Assembly: GCA_048013815.1 (NCBI GenBank)
Contig: CM106586.1
Span: forward strand, 13,888,001-13,952,000
Direction of reading: 5' to 3'
Source of the DNA: Setoptus koraiensis
Taxonomy: Eukaryota; Animalia; Arthropoda
DNA: 64,000 nucleotides
The notes beneath the pieces are model-generated. The model was not told the origin of the DNA. It was given only the letters and a program-made list of their open reading frames with translations, and searched no databases. Of this stretch, positions 2,754-49,415 are shown piece after piece; within the stretch, counting starts at the first letter, position 1, and every line of letters begins with the position of its first letter. The position numbers were made by a program, and so were the translations under genes.

Positions 2754-2780
2754 CGATGTCATGCTCATGAGGTCTACCTT

Positions 2781-3185
2781 ATCAGATTCAATTCATTGCT
2801 GGTTGGTAAGATTATTTTGACCTGCAGAAGAAACCTAGAAACAAAACTAGAGAGAGCAGAACAATCAGACAGGCTGTTGAATGGAGCTTGGCTGCTGAAG
2901 AAAATGAAGCTTCTATCCATATTAATCATACGATACGAATGAAAACAAGGTTTGACCATTTTCGAGCTTTAGCCAACAGAAGGTTTCATTTTTCTCTCTG
3001 TTCTTTTTTAATACTCGAATGACAAGCGAGAAATCAGCAAGATCATGCAATCGCATTGCTGGCAACAAGTTGTTGTCCGATTCCGGATGTCGTTATCTCT
3101 GGTCTTCGTTTCCAAAAGTAGTGCTTGAATGAGGAGGTCTTTCTCAGATGAACCCAGAAATCTAGTTTATTTCTGTTTCCGGTTT
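2781..3185 (+). pseudogene. Internally deleted third copy of the secreted 6-Cys protein gene plus its conserved 3' flank
   Basis: 2781-2870 translates IRFNSLLVGKIILTCRRNLETKLERAEQSD versus FRFISLLVGQVILTCKRNLETKLELAEQSD in 15674-16795. It then jumps to the 3' flank (TTTTCGAGCTTT, CAGCAAGATCATGC, TTTCTCAGATGAACCCAGAA..TTTATTTCTGTTTCC) shared with both intact copies. Confidence 0.85.
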
Positions 3186-3654
3186 GTCACTCTTCTTTGT
3201 TCTCACTTTTGCTATATTTTTGGAAATGGACAGACCGAAATAGGACAACCTCTTATGCCTAGCCCGGAGTTCCCAGATCTCGCTCACAAGTGATGTGGAG
3301 AGATGGTTCTCTAAAACGCAGCCTACTCTTCACTGTTAAATAGCCTCAAACAAAACTATATTATGAAATATATCGTATTCCTAGTTAATGAACATAGTAA
3401 TGCAGCTAAAGTATTCTAAAGATCAATTACAATCTTTTCTGATAAGTTTGTATGTATTCACAATCGATATAATAATCGAAGAGACTGAAAGACTGGTATG
3501 CAATTTCTTGTAGCGACCGATTTTGATGGATTTTTAGCACCGATTTGCCATATTCCACAGATCTTCGAAGAATTATTTCAAATCAAGCTTGAACTGCTAT
3601 GTGTTACATATCTCAATGGATACTATATCTTTTATTCTAAAGAGGGGATAGTGA

Positions 3655-12616: not shown

Positions 12617-12798
12617 AGTAACAACTAGCGCGCGCTCCTCCATTTTCTCGCTGTAAACGCATAAATATGTATGAGCGTCGTTTTGGTGAACATTCGCATA
12701 AATGTATTTTATGATTAGAAATATATTTGTTTAGAAATAAATATATCGTTTATAATTTAGAGGTTGATAATTTTGTACATTCATTTTCATACTTCAAA

Positions 12799-14361
12799 AT
12801 GTTTAGCAAACTTAAATCGTTTATCGGTGGAGGTAACTCGAGAGATGACTCAAAGAAAGAGGATTCCAAGAGTGATGAGCCCAAGAAAGACGGTTCCAAA
12901 AGTGACGAGTCCAAGAAGGACGGTTCCAAAAGTGATGAGCCCAAGAAAGACGGTTCCAAAAGTGATGAGCCCAGGAAGGACGGTTCCAAAAGTGACGAGT
13001 CCAAGAAGGACGGTTCCAAGAGTGACGAGTCCAAGAAGGACGGTTCCAAGAGTGACGAGTCTAAGAAAGATGAGTCCAAGAATGAGGACTCTAAAAAAGA
13101 TAACTCTAAAAAAACGGAGTCCACAGGAAAAGATTCTGTGAAGGTGGACACTGAAAAGGAGGATCCGATGAAGGCGAGATCCGAAAAACAGGATGCTAAA
13201 AAAGTAGGCATGTATAAACAGGATGATGTGGAAGTGAACTCCCCCAAGAAGGGAGAATCTAACAAGGGTGCTGATAAAAAAGACGATAATGATGTGCCCG
13301 AAAAAGGATTGAAAAAAAAAGGCAATATACAAAAATCATTGTCAGACGCTATGACACCGAGTGTCAAGGGATCAGGAAATAGGAAAGAAGGGCAAGAAGG
13401 CTCTAGCAGAACCAATTCCATTGCTCCCAGTGGTTCAGAACCTACAACGGTTGCGAGTAAGAGATATGAGCAAGTTTCGTCACCCTCTAACGATAGTCTG
13501 TCATCAGAAAATAATTTTGCTTCTAGCCAAGGCGGCTATAGCGTTATTTCTGACGACGATGGCTATGATATGGAATTGGACAAGGATATCATAGATGCGA
13601 TGATGAAGGACGAAGACAGTGAGTCGGAGATGGATGACTCTTCTAGCCCGGATGACTCTTCTAGCCCGGATATCTCTCCGGTCGCTCCAGAAGGGCGGTC
13701 ACCGGCTCAAAAGATCCAGCGCAAAATTGGAAAATCTCCAAAAGTTGAAAAAGGAGGCTCCAGATCTGGCAGTAAGAGTCCAACGAGAGGCCATCGCTCG
13801 CCGGCTCAGAAAATCCAGCGTAAAACCAAAAAATCTCCAAGAGGCCAAAAAAGAAGCGCTAGATCTGCCAGTAAGAGTCCAACAAGAGGCCATCGCTCGC
13901 CGGCTCGGAAAATCCAGCGTAAAACCACAAAATCTCCAAGAGGTAAAAAAAGAGGCGCTAGATCCGCCAGTAAGAGTCCAACAACGGTACGTAAATCACC
14001 GGCTCGAGCGGTCCAGCGTAAAACCACAAAATCTCCACGAGGTCAAAAAAGAGGCGCTAGATCTGCCAGTAAGAGCCCAGCTACGCGCCGTAGATCACCG
14101 GCTCGGAAAATCCAGCGTAAAACCACAAAATCTCCAAGAGGTCGAAAAAGAGGCGCTAGATCTGCCAGTAAGAGTCCAGCTACGGGCCGTAAATCACCAC
14201 GTAATCAGCTGAAAAAATCCAGCCCGTCACCGAGAACCAGAAGATATTTAGCTAGAGAGGTTAAGAAGAACGCTAAAAAGTCAAGAGGTCGACGCGCAAG
14301 TGTAAAGAAAACAAGAAACGCTAGGAGAAAATCTTCGAACTCTTCGCCGAGGAGCGGATGA
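12799..14361 (+). CDS. 520-aa tripartite repeat protein: zwitterionic 10-aa repeats, acidic centre, basic 33-aa SPx[KR] repeats (protamine-like/histone-H1-tail-like)
   Basis: ATG at 12799 in an AAAATG context. Repeat unit divergence is largely frame-preserving. The C-terminal half is dominated by K, R, S, P, A and G. Confidence 0.85.
   Translation: MFSKLKSFIGGGNSRDDSKKEDSKSDEPKKDGSKSDESKKDGSKSDEPKKDGSKSDEPRKDGSKSDESKKDGSKSDESKKDGSKSDESKKDESKNEDSKKDNSKKTESTGKDSVKVDTEKEDPMKARSEKQDAKKVGMYKQDDVEVNSPKKGESNKGADKKDDNDVPEKGLKKKGNIQKSLSDAMTPSVKGSGNRKEGQEGSSRTNSIAPSGSEPTTVASKRYEQVSSPSNDSLSSENNFASSQGGYSVISDDDGYDMELDKDIIDAMMKDEDSESEMDDSSSPDDSSSPDISPVAPEGRSPAQKIQRKIGKSPKVEKGGSRSGSKSPTRGHRSPAQKIQRKTKKSPRGQKRSARSASKSPTRGHRSPARKIQRKTTKSPRGKKRGARSASKSPTTVRKSPARAVQRKTTKSPRGQKRGARSASKSPATRRRSPARKIQRKTTKSPRGRKRGARSASKSPATGRKSPRNQLKKSSPSPRTRRYLAREVKKNAKKSRGRRASVKKTRNARRKSSNSSPRSG
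12865..13104 (+). repeat. 30-bp coding tandem repeat, 7 near-perfect copies plus 1 degenerate (SKSDE[PS][KR]KDG)
   Basis: Units start at 12865, 12895, 12925, 12955, 12985, 13015, 13045 and 13075. Confidence 0.95.
13699..14210 (+). repeat. 99-bp coding tandem repeat, 5 copies plus a partial (SPA[QR]KIQRKT.KSPRG.KRGARSASKSP....R)
   Basis: Units start at 13699, 13798, 13897, 13996, 14095 and 14194. Confidence 0.95.
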
Positions 14362-14789
14362 GGAACGTAAACATCACATTTGTCATGTCCTTTGTAAATT
14401 GATTCTTACTAAATTCCGGTGATACATGACTCGAAAGCATTATATCAATATAAATTCTTAGTATAAATAATTATTTAAATAAATAATTATCAATAGAGGC
14501 ACTGGCTTCAAGCGCTTCTCAAGAGTTCAATGTTCTCGGTATTATTTCATCGTCGGTTTCGATTTCGACAGCTATGTCTAGTCGTCTTGATTGATTTGCC
14601 TGTGTTTCTTTTTACCAAAGTAAAAAGCCGAAATTCATCTCGTCTTCGTTCGTCGCTTATACAACAGAAATATAGAGACATATGTATTCATACACGATAG
14701 ACACTAATATAGACGAATCACGAATCTGAGCATCGCTCATTGCAAGTTAAGCGACCTTCATTTGATGGTGTTAGGCCCAGAAGAGGGTT

Positions 14790-15060
14790 CGTTTTCTGAT
14801 CTACCCAAGGATGGTTGATTTGCTCATTTTGCCTAACACTCTTGGCGATCGATTGGATTTTTTTTTTGTTAATACCATAGCTTGTGAGTGTCTTAAATTC
14901 AACAGAATTCAATAGAAGAGCTAATCACTGAACTTGTTAGTGATTGGAAAAAAAACTAATCGCCGATGCTAACATATTAAGCTGGAGTTTTCAGCTGGAA
15001 AACATTTTAAGTTGGCTATCAAAAATAGTCAGGAGATAAATTTTCGTCAACCACAATGAG
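14790..15060 (+). repeat. Dispersed repeat A, copy 1 (homologous to 49075-49415)
   Basis: Shared blocks in order: GATTTGCTCATT, AACACTCTT.GCGATCGATT, CCAT.GCTTGTGA, ATTCAATAGAAGAGC, TGAACTTGTTAG, TTAAGCTG.AGTTTTCAGCTGGAAAAC, GTTGGCTA.CAAAAATAG, CCACAATGA. Confidence 0.85.
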
Positions 15061-15563
15061 CAAGCCACTATAAAACTCATTGGTTCTCATTTCGAGATCA
15101 TGAAAGAGTCCAGAGCTGGACCTGAGCGAACAATTAAACGAGTCAGGCTATTGGCCACCCAAAATGCGTCGCCTATCCGCCTTCCCACTGGCGTAACCCA
15201 GTGGGTGAATGCGTGCCCATGGGTTGACCCATGGGCTAGAGAAAACCCATGGCGCAGCAAAACGGGCGCAACTCCATCCATGGGTCGTGCCACCACCACT
15301 ACACTGTGTACTTGTCAGGTCCAAACTGTTAAATTCAGTAGGACAATGAGTCTAGAACATTTCATTTTTGAAAAAACAACTCTCTGGAATGTTTTTTTTA
15401 GCTAATTTCGATGGTAAATCAGAATAACTCTCTTTGGAATGAAAATTTCTAAAAATACTCGCAATATAGACACTCAGGCTACTCATGCTCATCAAATGAT
15501 AATATCGCAATCCCAAAACACATTTTACCTCATATGCATTGTGAGTCAAAATTTTTGGTCTCA

Positions 15564-15570
15564 TATAAAT
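15564..15570 (+). promoter_or_regulatory. TATA box of secreted-protein paralog 1
   Basis: CATATAAAT.GGGTGAGAT ~105 nt upstream of the ATG. The same motif, with GATAATATCGC further upstream, is conserved in paralog 2. Confidence 0.65.
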
Positions 15571-15673
15571 AGGGGTGAGATCACCAGTGGTCTGCTGGCA
15601 ATCAATGAAAAGTAAGATTCATTTGGTTGAAGAAACTAAAGATTTGAACAATTTTTAAATAAAAATTCATATT

Positions 15674-16795
15674 ATGATGTCAGAACAAAAATTACTAGTC
15701 TCTTTACTAATCGTCGGCGCCGTCGCTTGTTTCCTGCCTAGTAGTTCAGCTGGGGATGGCGAGGGGAAACTGTGGACATCATCCAAGTCACTTTGCAAAG
15801 ACAGAGTAAAATCTATCGACTCGGTGTCAAAATTCATAGAATTTGCGAATGAAATGGACCAAACACCGAAACTAGAAAGCAAAAAAACTACCGAGCTCAT
15901 CAACAACTGTTTGAACAGTTTTGATGGTGTGGGAGATGTTAGAGCTGTGTACAAAATAGTTCAACGAATTCCAACAGTACATTCTGTATGCGAACAGGAT
16001 TTCAGAAAGGAATTATGCAGATTCAGCGCACGCGTGAATGGCAAGGGATCTCAATCCCAGGGATGCAAAACAACTCATGGATTATTCAGATTCATTTCAT
16101 TGCTGGTTGGTCAGGTTATTTTAACCTGCAAAAGAAACCTAGAAACAAAACTAGAGCTAGCAGAACAGTCAGACGAGGCCGTCAAGCGAAGCTTTGATGC
16201 TGTGGAAAACGATCAAAGTGTTCGTAAAATAATCGAAGCGAATTTGCATCTACCAGAAGTTGATCTACCAGAGAACATAGTTACATGGAGCGCTTTGTTG
16301 TCCGATCCAGAGCAAAGGTCCTTCCCTCTGGATACCAAAGAAATAGTTGAACAGTATTTGAATATAAAGCGATCTTGCAACTTGATTGATAGTTACGCGC
16401 GGAACTCAATCTATCCCATTAAGATATTAGCCATCCGTGGTTTCAAGGCTGGAGACAATGACGATGTTACAGACAACAAATTGAGTAGCAGCTCAAGAGT
16501 CCGTCGCTGGCTCAAAACTGTCCAATATTGCCACGGTCTAGGATTACTAACTTTTTATCCGGGCACTGAAGTACCTGAAAGCTTGTCGAACGATGTACTT
16601 GATGGCAAGCTGCACGATGGATTCGAACCAAAGAGCTTCGAAATTACTGACCGATTTGATGACTTTAGCCAGGATCTCTGGTACAAATATCAGCCACAAG
16701 TACAACAAAAGAGCGGAATCAAAGACCGGCTCAAGAAAGGTTTTGACAAGCTGAAACAATGCTTCCGTCCTAACGATGGAGAGGATGACGGATGA
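15674..16795 (+). CDS. Secreted 6-Cys family protein, paralog 1 (373 aa; candidate salivary effector)
   Basis: Signal peptide MMSEQKLLVSLLIVGAVACFLPSSSA, single exon, about half identical to 47494-48582 with six shared Cys. No known domain recognised. Confidence 0.9.
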   Translation: MMSEQKLLVSLLIVGAVACFLPSSSAGDGEGKLWTSSKSLCKDRVKSIDSVSKFIEFANEMDQTPKLESKKTTELINNCLNSFDGVGDVRAVYKIVQRIPTVHSVCEQDFRKELCRFSARVNGKGSQSQGCKTTHGLFRFISLLVGQVILTCKRNLETKLELAEQSDEAVKRSFDAVENDQSVRKIIEANLHLPEVDLPENIVTWSALLSDPEQRSFPLDTKEIVEQYLNIKRSCNLIDSYARNSIYPIKILAIRGFKAGDNDDVTDNKLSSSSRVRRWLKTVQYCHGLGLLTFYPGTEVPESLSNDVLDGKLHDGFEPKSFEITDRFDDFSQDLWYKYQPQVQQKSGIKDRLKKGFDKLKQCFRPNDGEDDG

Positions 16796-17155
16796 GTAAG
16801 AATCGTACGATATGAAGAGTTCGTTCTTACGAATCGTATGATATGATATGAATAGAAACAGTGCTCGAACATTTGCGAGCTCTCATCAGTAAAAAGTCTC
16901 TTTTTTCGATTCTATTTTCATACTGTATTTATTGGCCAGCGCTTGTTCTAGGAGCCAGCTTTTCGCATCTCATTAGGTCGATCAGAAAACGAAATTGGCA
17001 AGGTCTCACACTTGAGTTGTTGATAGAAAAAGATTGTCCAATTGGAGATGTTTTTATTTTGGGTCTTCGTTTTCAAAAATAGGGCTTTGTTTGAAAGGTT
17101 TTTCTCAGATGAACCAAGAGAGATCTGGTTCATTTCTGTTTCTTGTTTGCATTTT
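16796..17155 (+). repeat. Conserved non-coding 3' flank of the secreted family (copy 1)
   Basis: Collinear with the reverse complement of 47095-47493 and with 2905-3185. Confidence 0.85.
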
Positions 17156-17611
17156 CCCAATCGTCGCTATTGAACATGATGAGAAAGGTCCATATTGAAT
17201 TCGGACAGCTTAACTAGACAATTTACAAAACAATTCTCAAAATCCTAGATCACACTTGAGTTGATGCATCCATTGTAGAATGTTTTCATTTTGCCAATCT
17301 GTTCTAACTATCCCATAGAGATCGCTCGCTATAAGATCTTTCTATCTTATATCAAGATTGTCTTTTGTTTCTGAAAAGGTGCCCATTTTACCATCGAACG
17401 ACCAGGAGGAGCGACCATCTTCCTTCCGACTGCTTCCCTCTCCCCTGATCACTAATTCTGACTGGCAACTTGCCAGTGGCAAGTACTGAAAAATTCGACG
17501 TTTGGATCGGATAGTGATCGTCCTGTCGAACTTCATAAGGCCGAATGATCAAAACGCCCAAATCATGAGGCGTTGAGTAGTTTAACCCGTAAATTCAAAG
17601 TAAATCTAGCA

Positions 17612-17836
17612 ATGAAGCATTTGATCGAAACTTTATTATTCGCCTTCTTGGTCTGCAGTGGATTGTTTTCCGATCGAGTCTATACTTCGTCAGAAGATGG
17701 TAGCTACCCAATTCATTGTCCAGAACCTGAAAAATGTAACAGAGAATTACGTAGAGACGCGTTTCGACATATCAAGACCATTAAAGAGTTTCAGTTTTAT
17801 GCCAACAAGTTGATCAAAGATGATTTAGAGGTGTGA
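17612..17836 (+). CDS. Small putative secreted peptide (74 aa, 2 Cys in the mature part)
   Basis: MKHLIETLLFAFLVCSGLFS is signal-like, followed by HCPEPEKC. The ORF is short, so it may be spurious or partial. Confidence 0.45.
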   Translation: MKHLIETLLFAFLVCSGLFSDRVYTSSEDGSYPIHCPEPEKCNRELRRDAFRHIKTIKEFQFYANKLIKDDLEV

Positions 17837-18098
17837 GAATTGCGATAGTTACCTTGTTACTGTACGCAGTAAACCTAAACAGATGACAACGCTAGTATTT
17901 ACAATAAAAACTTGGGTCGAACCCTAATCAACAAATTAAAACACCAAGGGAACCTTCGAAGGGCACAAAAATAGCTGATCGCAATATCTGAGGTTAGGCT
18001 CTTGGTCGTGAGAGATAAATTGTTACAGGAAAATTACACACTGTGTAGTACACTTATAAAGCCATTTAGATATCACAAATGATAAGAATTTCTTTGTT

Positions 18099-19761
18099 TT
18101 ATGGTTGACTAGAACAATTATTCTGTATGGAGGAATCTGGCTTCGGCCGTTGACCCCGAAATAGTAACAAATAGAAAATTGCCACCACTATCGAGCATAC
18201 CGATAGAAACATCATGGAATCTGCGTGTTGGAGAGGACCATTAGCAAAAATCGTAGTTAAGATTAAAAATCACTATCAATTATGCCATGAATATAGAATG
18301 AGGAGTCATAATATCGTAACTTACCTCCATAAGAGTATTCCCCATCGCTCGTCTTCTTTTTCATATATACCACAATCAGTGAGAAGATACTATTTAAAAA
18401 CATCACGGAAGTTGTTGAAAATCCAGAAATTGTTGCTTCGCGAACAAAACCACTGCATAAATGGGCGGACATATTTGCGAAACACGGTTTAGCTGTACTA
18501 CCGAGGAATGCTGTGAATAACGATGAACTGATTATCAGCCACTTGTGGTCTCGTAATTGTATGGCTTGAAAATATAACACTATTGCCACGGTGCTAAGGC
18601 AGGCTAATATCTTGACACCAGTTAGGCTAGTTTTAATTATAAGCACTGAATAAGATGACACAAAGAGGAATACTGAACCAGATATAGCTCCTATTGACAT
18701 TAGCTGACCACAGAATTGGTTGTCGTAATTTGCAGTTTTTAGTATATCTTGTAGTATGGGTGATATTGCTAAGGGAAACACTTCTCTGCAGGTCAAAAAA
18801 AACGAGTGGATCATGAAATCTTTGTTACTCAGCATAATTTTTATGCCATCCCTATAGGATATTGTAGAGTTGCTGGATATCATTACACGATTACTGGGAG
18901 GTGTAGGTGGCTTCGAGTCGCGGACACATATCGACACAATCAAAACTGAAGTCAGTGCCACTGCCAGATTGAGATATGCCAATAAGTATACCTGGTAGCG
19001 ATTTGTAATATAGATTGGCATCATGTAAGCTGCAATAGCATATCCAATTTCGAAGCCGATATATATCACAGCCCAAGCGGTAAATCGTTCTTTCTCTTTA
19101 AACCATGTCTCGGAAACCTTTAGTGGTAAACAAAAAAACAAAGTTACAACTTGTTGATTGATAATCGTTGAGATAACAAAATAAAAGTAACGTAAACTAA
19201 TATAAAATGGTAAATCCGGCAAGAAAAAGAGAGCTCTAAGTCCATTACGCAATAGAGTCAGCACTACTCCTGTATATATTCCGACTTTCAGACCCCATTT
19301 GTCGACTATCCAGGCGGTTGGCAAAGTGGTCACAAGAGGTATGTATGAGCAAGCGCTTACTATCCAAGTGTATATTTTGAGATCTGTGCTCAATAAATCG
19401 AGTATAACTTCCAAGACGGGAGCCAAAACCTCGGTCTAGAATTGTGCATACAAGTCAGACACAAAAACAAGATTATTTATCTCCTTCTATTAGATAGAAA
19501 TATGAAATATTGTTATGTCAGTAAGAATCAAAGTTTGGTATAAATGTAACTCACTATTGCAAGCGAAAAACCCCAGACGAACATTGCAAATAACACTAGC
19601 CATCTTCTTCTATTCGACTTGAAAATATTCACAGTGGTAACTTGGTCTGTAATCTCGTCAGGTGATTCGACAGAGTTTTCATTACAGTGTTCATAAGATG
19701 ATGTGACATTGTCCAGTAAGTCATTTTCGACAATTGGCTTCTCTTCGCTTTCGCAAATCAT
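18099..19761 (-). CDS. MFS transporter, SLC49 (FLVCR/DIRC2-like) family; exons 19761-19555, 19435-18325, 18220-18099
   Basis: RRRWLVLF before TM1, motif-A-like WIVDKWGLK, FCLPLKVSETWFKEKERFTA and DSKPPTPPS. Introns GTGAGT..TAG and GTAAGT..CAG are phase-compatible, and the last exon supplies TM12 (DSMMFLSVCSIVVAIFYLLLF). Confidence 0.88.
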
Positions 19762-39400: not shown

Positions 39401-42400
39401 CACTCTCTCGCTCACTCGCTGCCACACACGTGCTAACCATCCGACTATGACTCTTGCACTTTTGCACCGCGGGCCTCATTGCACCGCGGGCCTCGTTGCA
39501 CCACGGGCATCGTTGCACCATCGCATCACGCAGCGCCATTTGACTATTGGACTATTGCAGCATTGCAGCATTGCAGCATTGCAGCATTGCAGCATTGCAG
39601 CATTGCAGCATTGCAGCATTGCAGCATTGCAGCATTGTCGCATTGTCGCATTGTTGCATTGTTGCATTGTCGGATTGTCGGATTGTCGCACTGTCGCATA
39701 ATGAAGCGATAATGGATAAGTATAGTGTAGCGCGACGAGAACAGTAGCATATCGCTGGTCGGCCTATGCGCGACGTATTATCATCATTTGCCATTGCCGT
39801 CATGCAATCGATGGAGTAGTTGCGTCGCCACTGCACTCGTGGTGCAGCTCAATCAGACAATTCAAACCCTGTTTCGAACAGAAAAAGAAAGTCGCCACCG
39901 TCGTCCGACTTTTCGCCAACTTTTGTCGGGGCCCCCAAACAACAACTGAGCCACTGGAGTTTTAGCAGACGGATATGGCTCGTGCAACGCCGATCGGCGG
40001 CCATGATGAAATCATCAGCAACGAGCGACAAACAAGCCGCCGCTTGCAGTCTTGCAAAAGTGCGTCTTGTCAGTCGTTGTGTGGGCCCAACTCGGATTAA
40101 TAATTGCGCTTATATCATTTGTATGGACATGTTGGCTGCACAGTGCGGGGGCCCCATATCTATATCGCGTATAGCGCGTAAATGGCGTATATGGCGTAGA
40201 GTGTTTGGACTTGTTTATGCGGCCGGCGCACAAATGGCAGTTTGCGAGAATGCATGATACCAGCGGCCAGAAATAGATTTATATATATATATGACAATGG
40301 TTGACTTTCTATTATAGCTTTTGTGGTGTAATGGTTGTCGTGCTCACTGATGCGCACCGCTCGCCCAAATTGAGGCCCCCTGTGCACCATGGGCCCCCGC
40401 AACACATTGCACTACCGCTCACAAGCATTCAATGGTGCATTCAATGGAGCATCTTCGCAAATGGTGCGCCGCACCAGCAGCAAGGTGCATTTGTTTTTAA
40501 CTTTTTCTAGTTGATCGCCGCCAGCAGGCACCACTGAGCAGTAACTGCTTATTCAGTGCCATATCCGGTGAATGGATCGCTCGAAGTCGAGCAACGGATC
40601 AATAAACGAGAGAGGGCCCGTAATGAACGTCAATTTAGTGCGCGCACATTAACTACAAACAAGCGATGATAGATTTATCTGTGAATCATAAACATTTTAT
40701 ATCCGTCGCGAGCCATTGATTGCGATGCAAACTGGCTCACTTTTGGACATTGTCACTACTCAATGCCGGCAACTTAACAGTTGGCTGTTGCCCTTTTTTG
40801 TTGGGCCCCAAAAAGGGCCGCTGCACACAAGCGTCACACTGGCTGCTGTTATGTAATGATCTCTCTCTCTCTCTCGTAAGCAGCAACAAGACCATACGAT
40901 GATGGATTGATCGATTACCTAACGAGCCGTGCGCGCCATCTATAGAGCAAGGTTCTGCTGATGGCCTGGCGATGCACGCGCCAGCGGATCTCTCATCGTC
41001 GTTGCTCGCTAAGGGCTGATGGGCCCCATTTTGGGGTCCGGCGCCACCCATTGTCCGCACATAAAGCGCTGCACATAAAGCGCTGCACATAAGGATCCGA
41101 ATATAAAGATCCAGATATAAAAATACGTCGAACAGGCCGGATACGCTAGAGGGCCAGCACTGCGACACTGGACAGCAGGTATTGTTGTCGGCGAGCCGCC
41201 AGTTAATTAATGGCCGATCATTGTTGGCAATTAATTGTGTGTCGTCGCCTGCTACCGGCCAGCAGCATCGTGGGGCCAATATTAAGTTACTTTGTTGGAT
41301 TATGCTCGTTATTTGCTCTCTATTTGTTGATGTTGTTGTGATGAAGCGACAAATCTGTTTTGCGGGCGCCCCCGTTTAGGCCGCTCGGCCAGACTGCTGC
41401 GAGCTGGCACCAATGTGAGGCAATTGTGTAATTGAAACCAGTTAGCCAAGTGAGCGGTTTCCAGCGGCTTCCAGCGACGCACTCTTAATGGCAATGGGGG
41501 GCCATATTGGGCATATCGAGAGCGGACTTTATTTTATTGCGCCTTGTCGGACACAATTGTTTCGTTAGTGGGCGACAAGTTCGCTTGTGTGGCATAATTG
41601 TCTGGACGAGCATAGCGGACGAGAGAGGGGGCCCCATCTCTGGCCTGGCTGGCGGAATAGCGAAATGCAGCGACGGGGAATAGTCGTTTAGTTTAATCGC
41701 GCGGGCGCCAATGCTTGTTTAATCAAATTAACCACTGAGAGCCACAACTGGGGCCCACAACAGCTGACAGCCAGAGAAAACAAAACCATCCGCGGGACAA
41801 CATTTAATACACAACATGAGCGATATATACACACACAACAAAAGCGTTTATCTCTTTTGGCACTTAGTGGCGCGCACAACTAGCCAGACAGAAACTTAAA
41901 TCCATTACGTAAGAGCCGGCGGCAGCGATAGAGCGAGGGGCCCCTGGCAGCGACTTTGCAGAGGGCCGCCAACAAAGAAACGGACGAGCATCATCAACTA
42001 ATATAGTGCAGCCAGACAGAGCGTCTTTGGCCGTCATTGGAAGTGGGGCCAGCAACAACAAAGAAAGGGCCCCATGCAAGCGCCACCAAAAGAAGCAAAC
42101 TCATATTCATTCATCAGCTACTTTTGGCTCGTTACGAGCAAATTGTTTTGTTGTTTTATCACCCGGCAGGGCGCGCACTCTGTGATGACACTGACTGTGT
42201 GACACACATATTACGTCACTGATATTATATCACTGTTATAGGCAACGGGGCCCAGATTGATGGGGCGCTATTGACTGGCTGGCGTTGTTTGTCGTCGCTG
42301 TGTTGCCAGTGGGTGTAAATTCATTGTAAATTTGTGTATAACTAGCTCAGCAGCAGCAGCAGCACCAAAAACAATTGTCGATGTGATTAACGGCGACGGT

Positions 42401-47094: not shown

Positions 47095-47493
47095 ACTTCC
47101 GTTAAACCCTGGCCGGAAACAGAAATAAACCAGACTTCTGGGTTCATCTGAGAAACACCTTCCCGACCTCGCTCCATTTCTGAAATCGAAGACCCAAAAG
47201 AGAGTGAAACATCCGGAATTGGAACACCCTCTAGCATTGCCGGTGCAAACGCATGATCTTGCTGACTTGATTTTCTCATCTAACTAATGAGACGCGAAAA
47301 ACTGGACCATAGAACAAGCGCTGACCAAGAAACTGGGCACGAAAATAGAATCGAGGGCAAAAAAAAAATGAGATCTTTTTGCCCTGTGCGAAAGCTCGAA
47401 AATGTTCAAGCCCTATCTTTATTCCTAACACCATTCATTTGATTCATATCATCACTCATAAGATTCACAGGAGTGAAAGCTTCATATCATCAC
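47095..47493 (-). repeat. Conserved non-coding 3' flank of the secreted family (copy 2)
   Basis: Reverse complement is collinear with 16796-17155 and 2905-3185. Confidence 0.85.
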
Positions 47494-48582
47494 TCAATGA
47501 GGTTTACCTTTAAGCTTGCCCAAACCTTTCTTGAGCAAGGCTTTGAATCCGGAGTGATGGTTGTCCGATTTGTGTTCGTGCGATGGAAATTTGAATCGGA
47601 GATCCGAGTCAATGTCGTTGAATTGTTCAGCCACTTCAAAGCTCTTTGGCTCTACTTGCCCCTCGATGAAGTCCTCGTCTTTGAACAATTCTAGTGGAAG
47701 TATTGCCAAGAATGCACCTCGGCAATATTGGACAGTTTTCAGCCAGCGTCTGACTATTTGGCTACTCTTCAATTTGTGGTCTACAACATGGTTGTTGTCT
47801 TCGGCCGTGAAGCCATAATTAGCTAACCTTTCAATGGGGGAGATTGAGCTTTGCGCGTAACTATCGATCAAATCGCAGGATCGCCTCAGATTCAAAAACT
47901 TTTCAATCGTTTCCTGGGTGTCTAAAGGAATGCGAGTGCTCTCACAGTTAGACGCCAAGTTTATCGTTGGAATGAGGTGTTCTGGTAGATCAACTTGTGA
48001 CAGGTCAAGACACTGATTGACCGTTTCACGAATGACTTGATCATTTTCTACAACATTCAGGCTCTGTTTAACGGCCTCGTTTGATTGTTCCGCTTGCTGC
48101 AGTTTTGTTTCAAGGTTTCTTTTACAGGTTAAAATAACCTGACCGAATATCTTTGAAGTTAATTCAAGCAATCCGTGATTCTTTTTTGTGTCTATGGGCA
48201 TATTGCTGGGCTTGTATCTTCTAAGGCGCGTATCATAAAATTCAATCATTATCTTGATGGCTTCATCATCACACACAGAATGAGATGTTTGCAGTGCCTG
48301 AACCATTTCTTTCATAGCTATCACATCTCTCACACCTCCATTACTGTTCAAACACTCGTTGATTATTTTGGTTGTTTCGCTATCTAGTTCCGGTGTTTGG
48401 TCCATCTCGTCTGCAAATTCTATGAACTTCGACAGTGAGTCGATAGATTTTACTCTGTCTTTGCAAAGCGACTTGGATGATGTCCAAGGTTTCCCCTCGC
48501 CACCACCAGCTGAACTAGTAGGCAGGAAACAAGCGACGGCGCCGACAATCAGCAAAAAGGATAAAACTTGTTGTGCTGACAT
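47494..48582 (-). CDS. Secreted 6-Cys family protein, paralog 2 (362 aa; candidate salivary effector)
   Basis: Signal peptide MSAQQVLSFLLIVGAVACFLPTSSA. Shares WTSSKSLCKDRVKSIDS, GQVILTCKRNLETKL, RSC.LIDSYA, VRRWLKTVQYC, EPKSFE and LKKG..KLK with paralog 1. Confidence 0.9.
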   Translation of the reverse strand: MSAQQVLSFLLIVGAVACFLPTSSAGGGEGKPWTSSKSLCKDRVKSIDSLSKFIEFADEMDQTPELDSETTKIINECLNSNGGVRDVIAMKEMVQALQTSHSVCDDEAIKIMIEFYDTRLRRYKPSNMPIDTKKNHGLLELTSKIFGQVILTCKRNLETKLQQAEQSNEAVKQSLNVVENDQVIRETVNQCLDLSQVDLPEHLIPTINLASNCESTRIPLDTQETIEKFLNLRRSCDLIDSYAQSSISPIERLANYGFTAEDNNHVVDHKLKSSQIVRRWLKTVQYCRGAFLAILPLELFKDEDFIEGQVEPKSFEVAEQFNDIDSDLRFKFPSHEHKSDNHHSGFKALLKKGLGKLKGKPH

Positions 48583-48701
48583 GTTAATCCGAATTTATAT
48601 CTAAGAATTGTAGTTCATCCAATCAAATAAGTCTTACTATTAATTTGAATACAATCTTCGGCTATGGAACAAAATGGTAACCTTAGGTTAATCTCACCCT
48701 C

Positions 48702-48708
48702 ATTTATA
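48702..48708 (-). promoter_or_regulatory. TATA box of secreted-protein paralog 2
   Basis: The minus strand reads CATATAAATGAGGGTGAGAT, matching the paralog 1 promoter. Confidence 0.65.
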
Positions 48709-49074
48709 TGAAAAAAAAAATTTGTATACCCAGACAATCCATAAGGAGAAACTGTATTTTTAGATCGCGATATTATCGCCCGATCAGTGACACATGAAAT
48801 TTGCTGCATAAAAAACATTTTGGGGAATCGCTTTCCGAAAATGAATTGTCTAAGCCGTTTTGTTTGACTGAGCTTGACATTCACCTGAGTGACGCCTTTT
48901 TACATCGGCCTCTACTTTGTGGTATATTCTTACAAGTTACAGTTGCAGTTGTGGCGTGGATTGCAGATAATAATCGGAACTGCGTATGTAAAAACCACTC
49001 ACCATGAGTGACTCTATGGAATATTCTCCTTCTACTCTTGGCCTATGCCCAACTCGATACTCCTACATGGATCC

Positions 49075-49415
49075 GGATTGAAAACCAAGGAGTCTCATGG
49101 TGATTTGCTCATTGTGGTTGACGAAAATTTATCTCAGACGGGCTCTATAATCCAGTTCTGCTAAAGCTAGATACTCAAACACTCTTTGCGATCGATTAGA
49201 AAGACTCTCGTTTATCCCATGGCTTGTGAATATGACTTAGATTGAACAAGATTCAATAGAAGAGCCTATCATCAATTGCAATGAACTTGTTAGAGACAGT
49301 AATAACTACTGGCCGCTGTCAGCATGTTAAGCTGCAGTTTTCAGCTGGAAAACGTTTTGTGTTGGCTACCAAAAATAGCCAAAAGTTTTGGTTAATTGTA
49401 AATGCACCACAATGA
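49075..49415 (+). repeat. Dispersed repeat A, copy 2
   Basis: See 14790-15060. Confidence 0.85.

Follow-up and report, generated by a model that had tools for sequence, protein, structure and literature searches.

A predicted secreted branch of a large six-cysteine protein family in the mite Setoptus koraiensis

Eriophyoid mites have two chromosomes and a small genome with very few introns (PMC7738191, PMC11879100), and the means by which they suppress plant defences or induce galls are unknown (PMC7738191). In the secretome of one of them, Aculops lycopersici, multi-member groups contain almost none of the secreted, herbivore-specific proteins (PMC7738191). The present analysis concerns two genes, A and B, in a 64,000-nucleotide (nt) stretch of the Setoptus koraiensis genome (GenBank assembly GCA_048013815.1, contig CM106586.1, positions 13,888,001 to 13,952,000 of the forward strand; hereafter the window, whose own numbering is used below unless a contig is named). 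A preliminary description, made from the sequence alone, had read the two as secreted six-cysteine proteins and candidate host-manipulating effectors. It now appears likely that both belong to a secreted, anchor-less and lineage-restricted subfamily with 28 intact copies, part of a family of at least 100 loci in this genome. The genome has shed much of the usual arthropod repertoire, yet it devotes at least 100 genes to one orphan extracellular domain.

Several described systems resemble these genes in part. The salivary families of the spider mite Tetranychus, as far as they are cited in PMC7738191, are likewise secreted, multi-copy, without known domains and confined to a narrow mite lineage; there, saliva or gland evidence exists, and the protein searches made here revealed no sequence relation to them. 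Insect odorant-binding proteins share the signal peptide, the helices, the six conserved cysteines and the habit of forming large, fast-evolving families, but they measure 120–150 amino acids (aa) against about 300 aa here, and most relatives of genes A and B are membrane-anchored. The secreted salivary gland proteins of the Hessian fly reportedly combine a conserved signal peptide and conserved non-coding flanks with a strongly divergent mature part. In the mite family, in contrast, the flanks diverge at about the rate of fourfold degenerate sites, the ratio of non-synonymous to synonymous divergence (omega) is not significantly above 1, and the proteins are large and folded, with a conserved core. 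The apicomplexan "6-Cys" (s48/45) domain is a beta-sandwich, and only the label "six Cys" is held in common with it.

Genes A and B and their membrane-anchored paralogs

The gene A protein, used as a tblastn query against all six frames of the window's own 48.8-Mb assembly (two contigs), returned 118 matches. Among them are 28 distinct intact short open reading frames (ORFs) of 331–373 aa with the same signal peptide, while at least 10 further matches are fragments or copies interrupted by stop codons. Most of the remaining matches are open frames of 420–600 aa, 32–39% identical over aa 30–300 (E 1e-47 to 1e-12, tblastn); aligned with gene A (alignment A1), these long members show 28–34% identity. 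The idea of a secreted family evolving by birth and death stands, but it had been framed around two genes and one relic, and the family is far bigger than that: dozens of membrane-anchored relatives accompany the intact and broken short copies. Many of the short genes form tandem arrays on contig 1 (at about 0.67, 3.36, 9.77, 10.09 and 11.03–11.07 Mb), and the rest are scattered on both contigs.

As originally described, A and B are intact, intronless paralogs in opposite orientation (Table 1). Their proteins are 53% identical across the whole length (E 1e-121). Gene A encodes a signal peptide, a helical six-cysteine domain of some 300 aa and, at the C-terminus, a basic helix; the start codon that aligns with the rest of the family is the second ATG, at 15677. 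The signal peptide is kept in all 28 short members. Their C-termini, read by eye, either stop right behind the basic helix or run into acidic tails and contain no hydrophobic stretch, so that a C-terminal transmembrane anchor is absent from the short members. The long paralogs have a homologous ectodomain, the same six cysteines and the same basic helix, and are equally orphan by sequence and fold; unlike genes A and B, which stop after the helix and fall in a clade of their own, they continue into a stalk, a transmembrane helix and a tail. Twenty long ORFs (421–593 aa) were fetched. All but one start with a hydrophobic, signal-peptide-like N-terminus, the exception beginning inside the domain, and a hydropathy scan found in 16 of the 20 a single hydrophobic C-terminal segment of about 20–35 aa followed by a short tail. 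In these 16, the order is signal peptide or other hydrophobic N-terminal segment, ectodomain, basic amphipathic helix, acidic His/Thr/Ala-rich stalk, transmembrane helix and short tail. The long relatives that carry the C-terminal segment are, by this layout, predicted type-I membrane proteins.

The six cysteines (C41, C79, C106, C152, C235 and C286) are invariant in 48 of 48 aligned members, short and long alike, which bears out the six-cysteine scaffold of the preliminary description; they presumably form three disulfides. In a tree built from the ectodomain columns, short and long members lie on the two sides of one branch (99% support). Three proteins from another sample group with the short ones, beside the basal member L049, and one clade of 24 members (100% support) contains, of all available sequences, only those of this genome. 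With about 300 aa of ectodomain homology to the long paralogs and the same six fixed cysteines, but no anchor, the short genes are best described as a putative secreted sister branch of the anchored paralogs rather than as strict members of their group. Truncation of long genes would be the simpler account of how the short ones arose. The basic C-terminal motif of the short members lines up with a conserved helix situated immediately behind the ectodomain of the long ones. First noticed in A and B, where it is real, this motif extends to about 19 of the 28 intact short members and to the proteins of the other sample; the claim needs trimming for the other nine, which lack the helix and have an early end or an acidic tail instead. 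A separate observation concerns L023:839-2104 (contig 1, about 12998638-12999903), which belongs to the long clade, measures 421 aa and ends soon after the basic helix, without an anchor. It would represent a second, independent loss of the transmembrane segment.

The duplicated cassette

Conservation extends well beyond the coding sequences (CDS). Some 260 bp upstream of the ATG and some 350 bp downstream of the stop codon match gene A to at least 15 further loci on both contigs, mostly at 67–77% identity and with E values down to 1e-42 (blastn). The promoter block of gene A, which includes a TATA box (TATAAATA) at 15564–15571, some 105 bp before the ATG, has blastn matches at 15 or more other family loci (67–77% identity), and a multiple alignment of upstream sequences contains three conserved blocks, the TATA box among them. 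The 3′ flank in turn matches 15 other loci at 66–86% identity, with indels whose lengths are not multiples of three. The TATA promoter block and the 3′ flank had both been noted as common to A and B; they are, the 3′ flank of the relic aligning as well, and the proposed duplication unit of promoter, gene and 3′ flank holds family-wide, at loci on both chromosomes. Because the copies include sequence upstream of the TATA box, duplication at the DNA level fits better than retroposition. What is duplicated at the DNA level as the subfamily grows would thus be a cassette of about 1.8 kb, made up of some 260 bp of promoter and 5′ untranslated region (UTR), the CDS and some 350 bp of 3′ flank. Such a process would deposit copies both in tandem arrays and at scattered sites on the two chromosomes, with loss, evident from relics and stop-interrupted copies, and with some exchange between copies.

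A and B themselves, in contrast to the earlier picture of one duplicated pair, fall in different subclades of the ectodomain tree, and the nearest relatives, L002 for gene A and L012 (contig 1) for gene B, both lie on the other contig. Each gene thus has its closest kin on the other chromosome, so the pair did not arise as a local inverted duplication. Their divergence is mosaic: synonymous divergence (dS) between A and B is 0.36 in the first 70 codons and 0.79–0.89 over the remainder, whereas dS between A and L002 shows no dip over the same codons. This combination suggests a tract of exchange over the 5′ end, probably an ectopic conversion covering the 5′ UTR, the signal peptide and the first helices (15648–15888 versus 48371–48611).

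Two further observations concern the non-coding sequence around these genes. A distal upstream block is common to A and B (14951–15142 versus 49026–49381; repeats D6 and I4). With respect to the genes, one part of this block keeps a direct orientation whereas the second part is inverted; a small element that has been rearranged, or a regulatory block at a distance, may explain it. Downstream, the 3′ flank is best conserved at 17100–17140, a piece that genes A and B have in common with the relic and with four or five further members (about seven in total). A conserved structured RNA was considered here and rejected: an 8-bp hairpin is possible, but the changes in its 3′ arm are not compensatory, in a comparison of only about seven members. 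Rfam returned zero matches in the 3′ flank of gene A, this piece included.

Fold, selection and site of action

AlphaFold2, supplied with the family alignment, gave a confident model (predicted local distance difference test 88, predicted template modelling score 0.83) that consists mostly of helices with four short strands. No structural neighbour was found for it: searches with the whole domain, its sub-domains not being folded singly, of three libraries (the PDB with Foldseek, PDB representatives with VIA-align, and the ESM Atlas) turned up no match that rose above the background of helical proteins. The PDB sequences, searched with a profile, had 0 matches at E up to 10, a search of the ESM Atlas by sequence features gave no usable match, and Pfam gave none for A or B and only scattered noise across the 48 aligned members (E up to 0.1). 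The preliminary statement that no known domain is matched is thus upheld by Pfam, PDB-sequence and fold searches alike, and the ectodomain, taken as a whole, is a candidate new fold. Individual candidates were set aside as follows. For the insect odorant-binding proteins (PBP_GOBP), there is no Pfam match in the 48 members at E up to 0.1 and no such protein among the fold matches, and the domain is about 300 aa long. The plant-type invertase/pectin methylesterase inhibitor (PMEI, PF04043), a four-helix bundle with 4 Cys, is matched by one of the 48 members at E 0.077, a stray, with no PMEI chain among the top fold matches. The apicomplexan s48/45 domain has no Pfam match, and the model is mostly helical.

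Relatives outside this genome are few. A HMMER profile search recovered 59 among 1.84 billion representatives, and a word-based protein search gave 3 matches, all in one SRA assembly. The 13 relatives that were looked up (ten clusters) all come from Logan (SRA) assemblies. Five were traced to compact, animal-like contigs, which belong to two SRA samples, and the layout recurs in relatives from another sample. The family is lineage-restricted, found in a few compact, mite-like genomes.

Selection was assessed on independent sister pairs, with region-wise codon models and with a site likelihood that sums over internal states. Across 11 phylogenetically independent sister pairs, dS is 0.48, non-synonymous divergence (dN) 0.195 and omega 0.40 (NG86), and windows of 20 codons range from 0.10 (aa 154–172) to 1.03 (aa 297–310). 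Under the GY+F3X4 codon model, a 25-member clade has an overall omega of 0.64. The three core regions lie at 0.40–0.56, and the fastest-changing stretches lie around 1 (0.9–1.3, not significant): 0.90 at about aa 97–143, 1.32 at aa 198–217, where p = 0.064 against 1 is optimistic because the patches were selected after the windows had been viewed, and 1.12 at aa 294–320 (p = 0.51). The hypervariable segments of the preliminary description (aa 85–135 and 290–350) coincide with these three only in part. A site test with separate synonymous and non-synonymous rates on a fixed tree, in which gap-rich columns were left out and recombination was not modelled, gave beta>alpha (p<0.05) at 7 sites, against about 9 that chance would produce, and purifying selection at 74. 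On diversifying selection of the mature protein, the data consist of the region omegas (0.90–1.32) and this site count.

The flanks provide the complementary measure. In the same pairs they are 70–75% identical, as measured by blastn (a global-alignment measure is uninformative, shuffled sequence also reaching about 0.71), and fourfold degenerate sites are 61–72% identical, so the flanks look to be evolving roughly neutrally. Flanks diverge about as fast as fourfold sites, and with DNA divergence of this size a protein stretch free of constraint can no longer be aligned whereas non-coding sequence still can, as expected from near-neutral divergence. Conserved flanks beside a diverged protein resemble an arms race by eye, and had been taken as its signature; here the combination fits near-neutral loop evolution, and the signature finds no support in patch omegas not significantly above 1 or in seven positive sites against about nine by chance. 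What is observed is a constrained core with loops drifting near the neutral rate, and diversifying selection is not demonstrated.

Transcription could be approached indirectly, as no sequencing run recorded as RNA covers the stretch. Four runs were placed on 13800–18800. X3 has even depth throughout, and X8 and X9 cover intergenic DNA, which identifies them as DNA runs. X5, instead, lies on genic pieces only, including 15895–16879 of gene A, and one of its joins skips 126 bases (17727–17852) with GT..AG ends only on the minus strand; from the genic-only coverage and this join, X5 is probably RNA and gene A probably transcribed. The X5 contigs, which represent a whole sample, carry no level, strand or tissue information.

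Together, these results suggest how the proteins might work. Common to the family is a mostly helical extracellular domain of about 300 aa with six invariant cysteines, presumably in three disulfides, and the short genes, by stopping after the basic helix, would yield soluble, secreted products. Purifying selection holds the helical core, and three loop-rich patches drift near the neutral rate. Outside the cell, the protein would act as a binding module whose variable loops are presented by the disulfide-locked core, and its cationic helix would serve for docking on anionic surfaces. The leading candidate for its place of action, though short of an even chance, is on extracellular surfaces or in secretions of the mite itself (gut, cuticle, reproduction, or as a partner of the membrane paralogs); saliva or the host plant comes next, as a real minority prospect, and a site elsewhere is less probable again.

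Certain points weigh against placing A and B in a secreted, anchor-less subfamily with such a role. Signal peptides and transmembrane helices were judged by hydropathy, with no trained predictor, and the cleavage site is inferred. The ectodomain tree is unrooted, so that the long genes could conversely have arisen from the short. The basic helix, missing from nine of the 28, is evidently not essential to the subfamily. The disulfide pairing was not read from coordinates and is thus presumed. X5 consists of contigs from a run of unrecorded type, and its assignment to RNA comes from one spliced join and the coverage pattern. Finally, the site of action is a guess.

Three other explanations were weighed. 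That the short proteins are salivary or gall effectors, with variable patches driven by a host–parasite arms race, can be held tentatively. They are secreted, lineage-specific and present in 28 copies with turnover, their common promoter suggests co-expression, gene A is probably transcribed, and overall omega by maximum likelihood is high; moreover, the expansion stands out against the near-absence of multi-member groups in the sole described eriophyoid secretome (PMC7738191). The selection analysis tells against the arms race itself, since positive sites show no excess over chance, patch omegas do not significantly exceed 1 and flanks diverge about as fast as fourfold sites. No eriophyoid saliva proteome was found in the literature. 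The majority of the family, furthermore, appears membrane-anchored, which argues that the domain began with a job at the animal's own cell surface and not as an effector for injection. A secreted branch that has reached 28 copies, with turnover, in so reduced a genome nevertheless keeps the saliva hypothesis alive as a minority view. Its boldest form, in which an undescribed extracellular fold underwent one of the largest gene expansions of a streamlined eriophyoid-type genome and its anchor-less branch was recruited as saliva-delivered, host-binding proteins by way of the fast-changing loops, is doubtful; if true, it would be the first protein effector family for eriophyoid mites. With its common promoter, the 28-copy secreted branch forms an obvious shortlist for saliva and in-plant work.

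The remaining two explanations are far less probable. A very diverged known family, such as a six-cysteine helical carrier of the odorant-binding type or a four-helix inhibitor of the PMEI type, would account for a helical, secreted protein with six conserved cysteines and for the stray PMEI match. It is very unlikely given that Pfam matches are inconsistent, that PDB sequences and three fold libraries are silent, and that about 300 aa is twice the size of those families. More improbable still are decaying or functionless duplicates drifting neutrally: relics, stop-interrupted copies and regions with omega near 1 exist, yet 28 ORFs have stayed open at a median pairwise dS of about 0.8, core omegas, 74 purifying sites and six invariant cysteines speak of constraint, and relatives from another sample keep the same layout. 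A secreted, anchor-less subfamily with a conserved core is accordingly preferred to all three.

Relics and surroundings of the window

Table 1. Coordinates of family features in the window
Feature	Position	Strand	Basis or remarks
Gene A, proximal promoter and 5′ UTR block	15417-15673	+	family-wide conservation; blastn and upstream multiple alignment
Gene A, CDS	15674-16795	+	uninterrupted intronless ORF, 373 aa
Gene A, predicted signal peptide (aa 1-26)	15674-15751	+	hydrophobic core, then SSSA (Ser -3, Ala -1); read from the translation
Gene A, conserved non-coding 3′ flank, probably 3′ UTR	16796-17155	+	aligns with the flank of gene B and with the relic
N-terminal relic (aa 2-70) of a long membrane-anchored member, adjoining gene A	17591-17830	+	tblastn with the L042 product, 45% identity, E 1.7e-12
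Gene B, conserved 3′ flank	47113-47493	-	inverted repeats I5, I6 and I8; alignment A3
Gene B, CDS	47494-48582	-	uninterrupted intronless ORF, 362 aa; short secreted subfamily
Gene B, promoter and 5′ UTR block, homologous to that of A	48583-48850	-	alignment A2; inverted repeat I1 to 48611; boundaries approximate
Deleted relic of the short family	2778-3190	+	direct repeat D5, inverted repeat I6, tblastn and flank alignment

The deleted relic noticed earlier is confirmed by the agreement of DNA repeats, tblastn and 3′-flank alignment. It keeps only the codons for about aa 136–173 (2778–2891), the sole part of the protein that tblastn recovers there, and part of the 3′ flank (about 3008–3190). 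At the DNA level, 2782–2870 is 91% identical to 16086–16174, and 3101–3182 matches the 3′ flank of gene B at 80%. The relic of a long member that adjoins gene A is crossed by the minus-strand spliced transcript with the 126-nt intron; this transcript may belong to the MFS transporter gene at 18263–19426 (minus strand) or to an unannotated gene.

The other long ORFs of the window are intronless animal genes (DnaJ, dynactin p62, M17 aminopeptidase, TFIIIC Tau95, a pancreatic-type lipase and the MFS transporter). The region around them is a family hot-spot: at least nine family loci, long and short intermixed, lie within 150 kb of contig 2 (13.79–13.94 Mb, window included), and long-member matches fall at 13856448-13869489, 19–32 kb before the window. 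No telomere repeat was found at the contig ends. Two repetitive tracts complete the inventory. Tandem coding repeats of 15 nt and 99 nt (D1, D4) lie at 12781–13185 and 13699–14188, within the ORF at 12727–14361, and a GC-rich stretch holds, at 39521–39696, an 8-nt microsatellite of about 22 units in which (CATTGCAG)n grades to (CATTGTCG)n.
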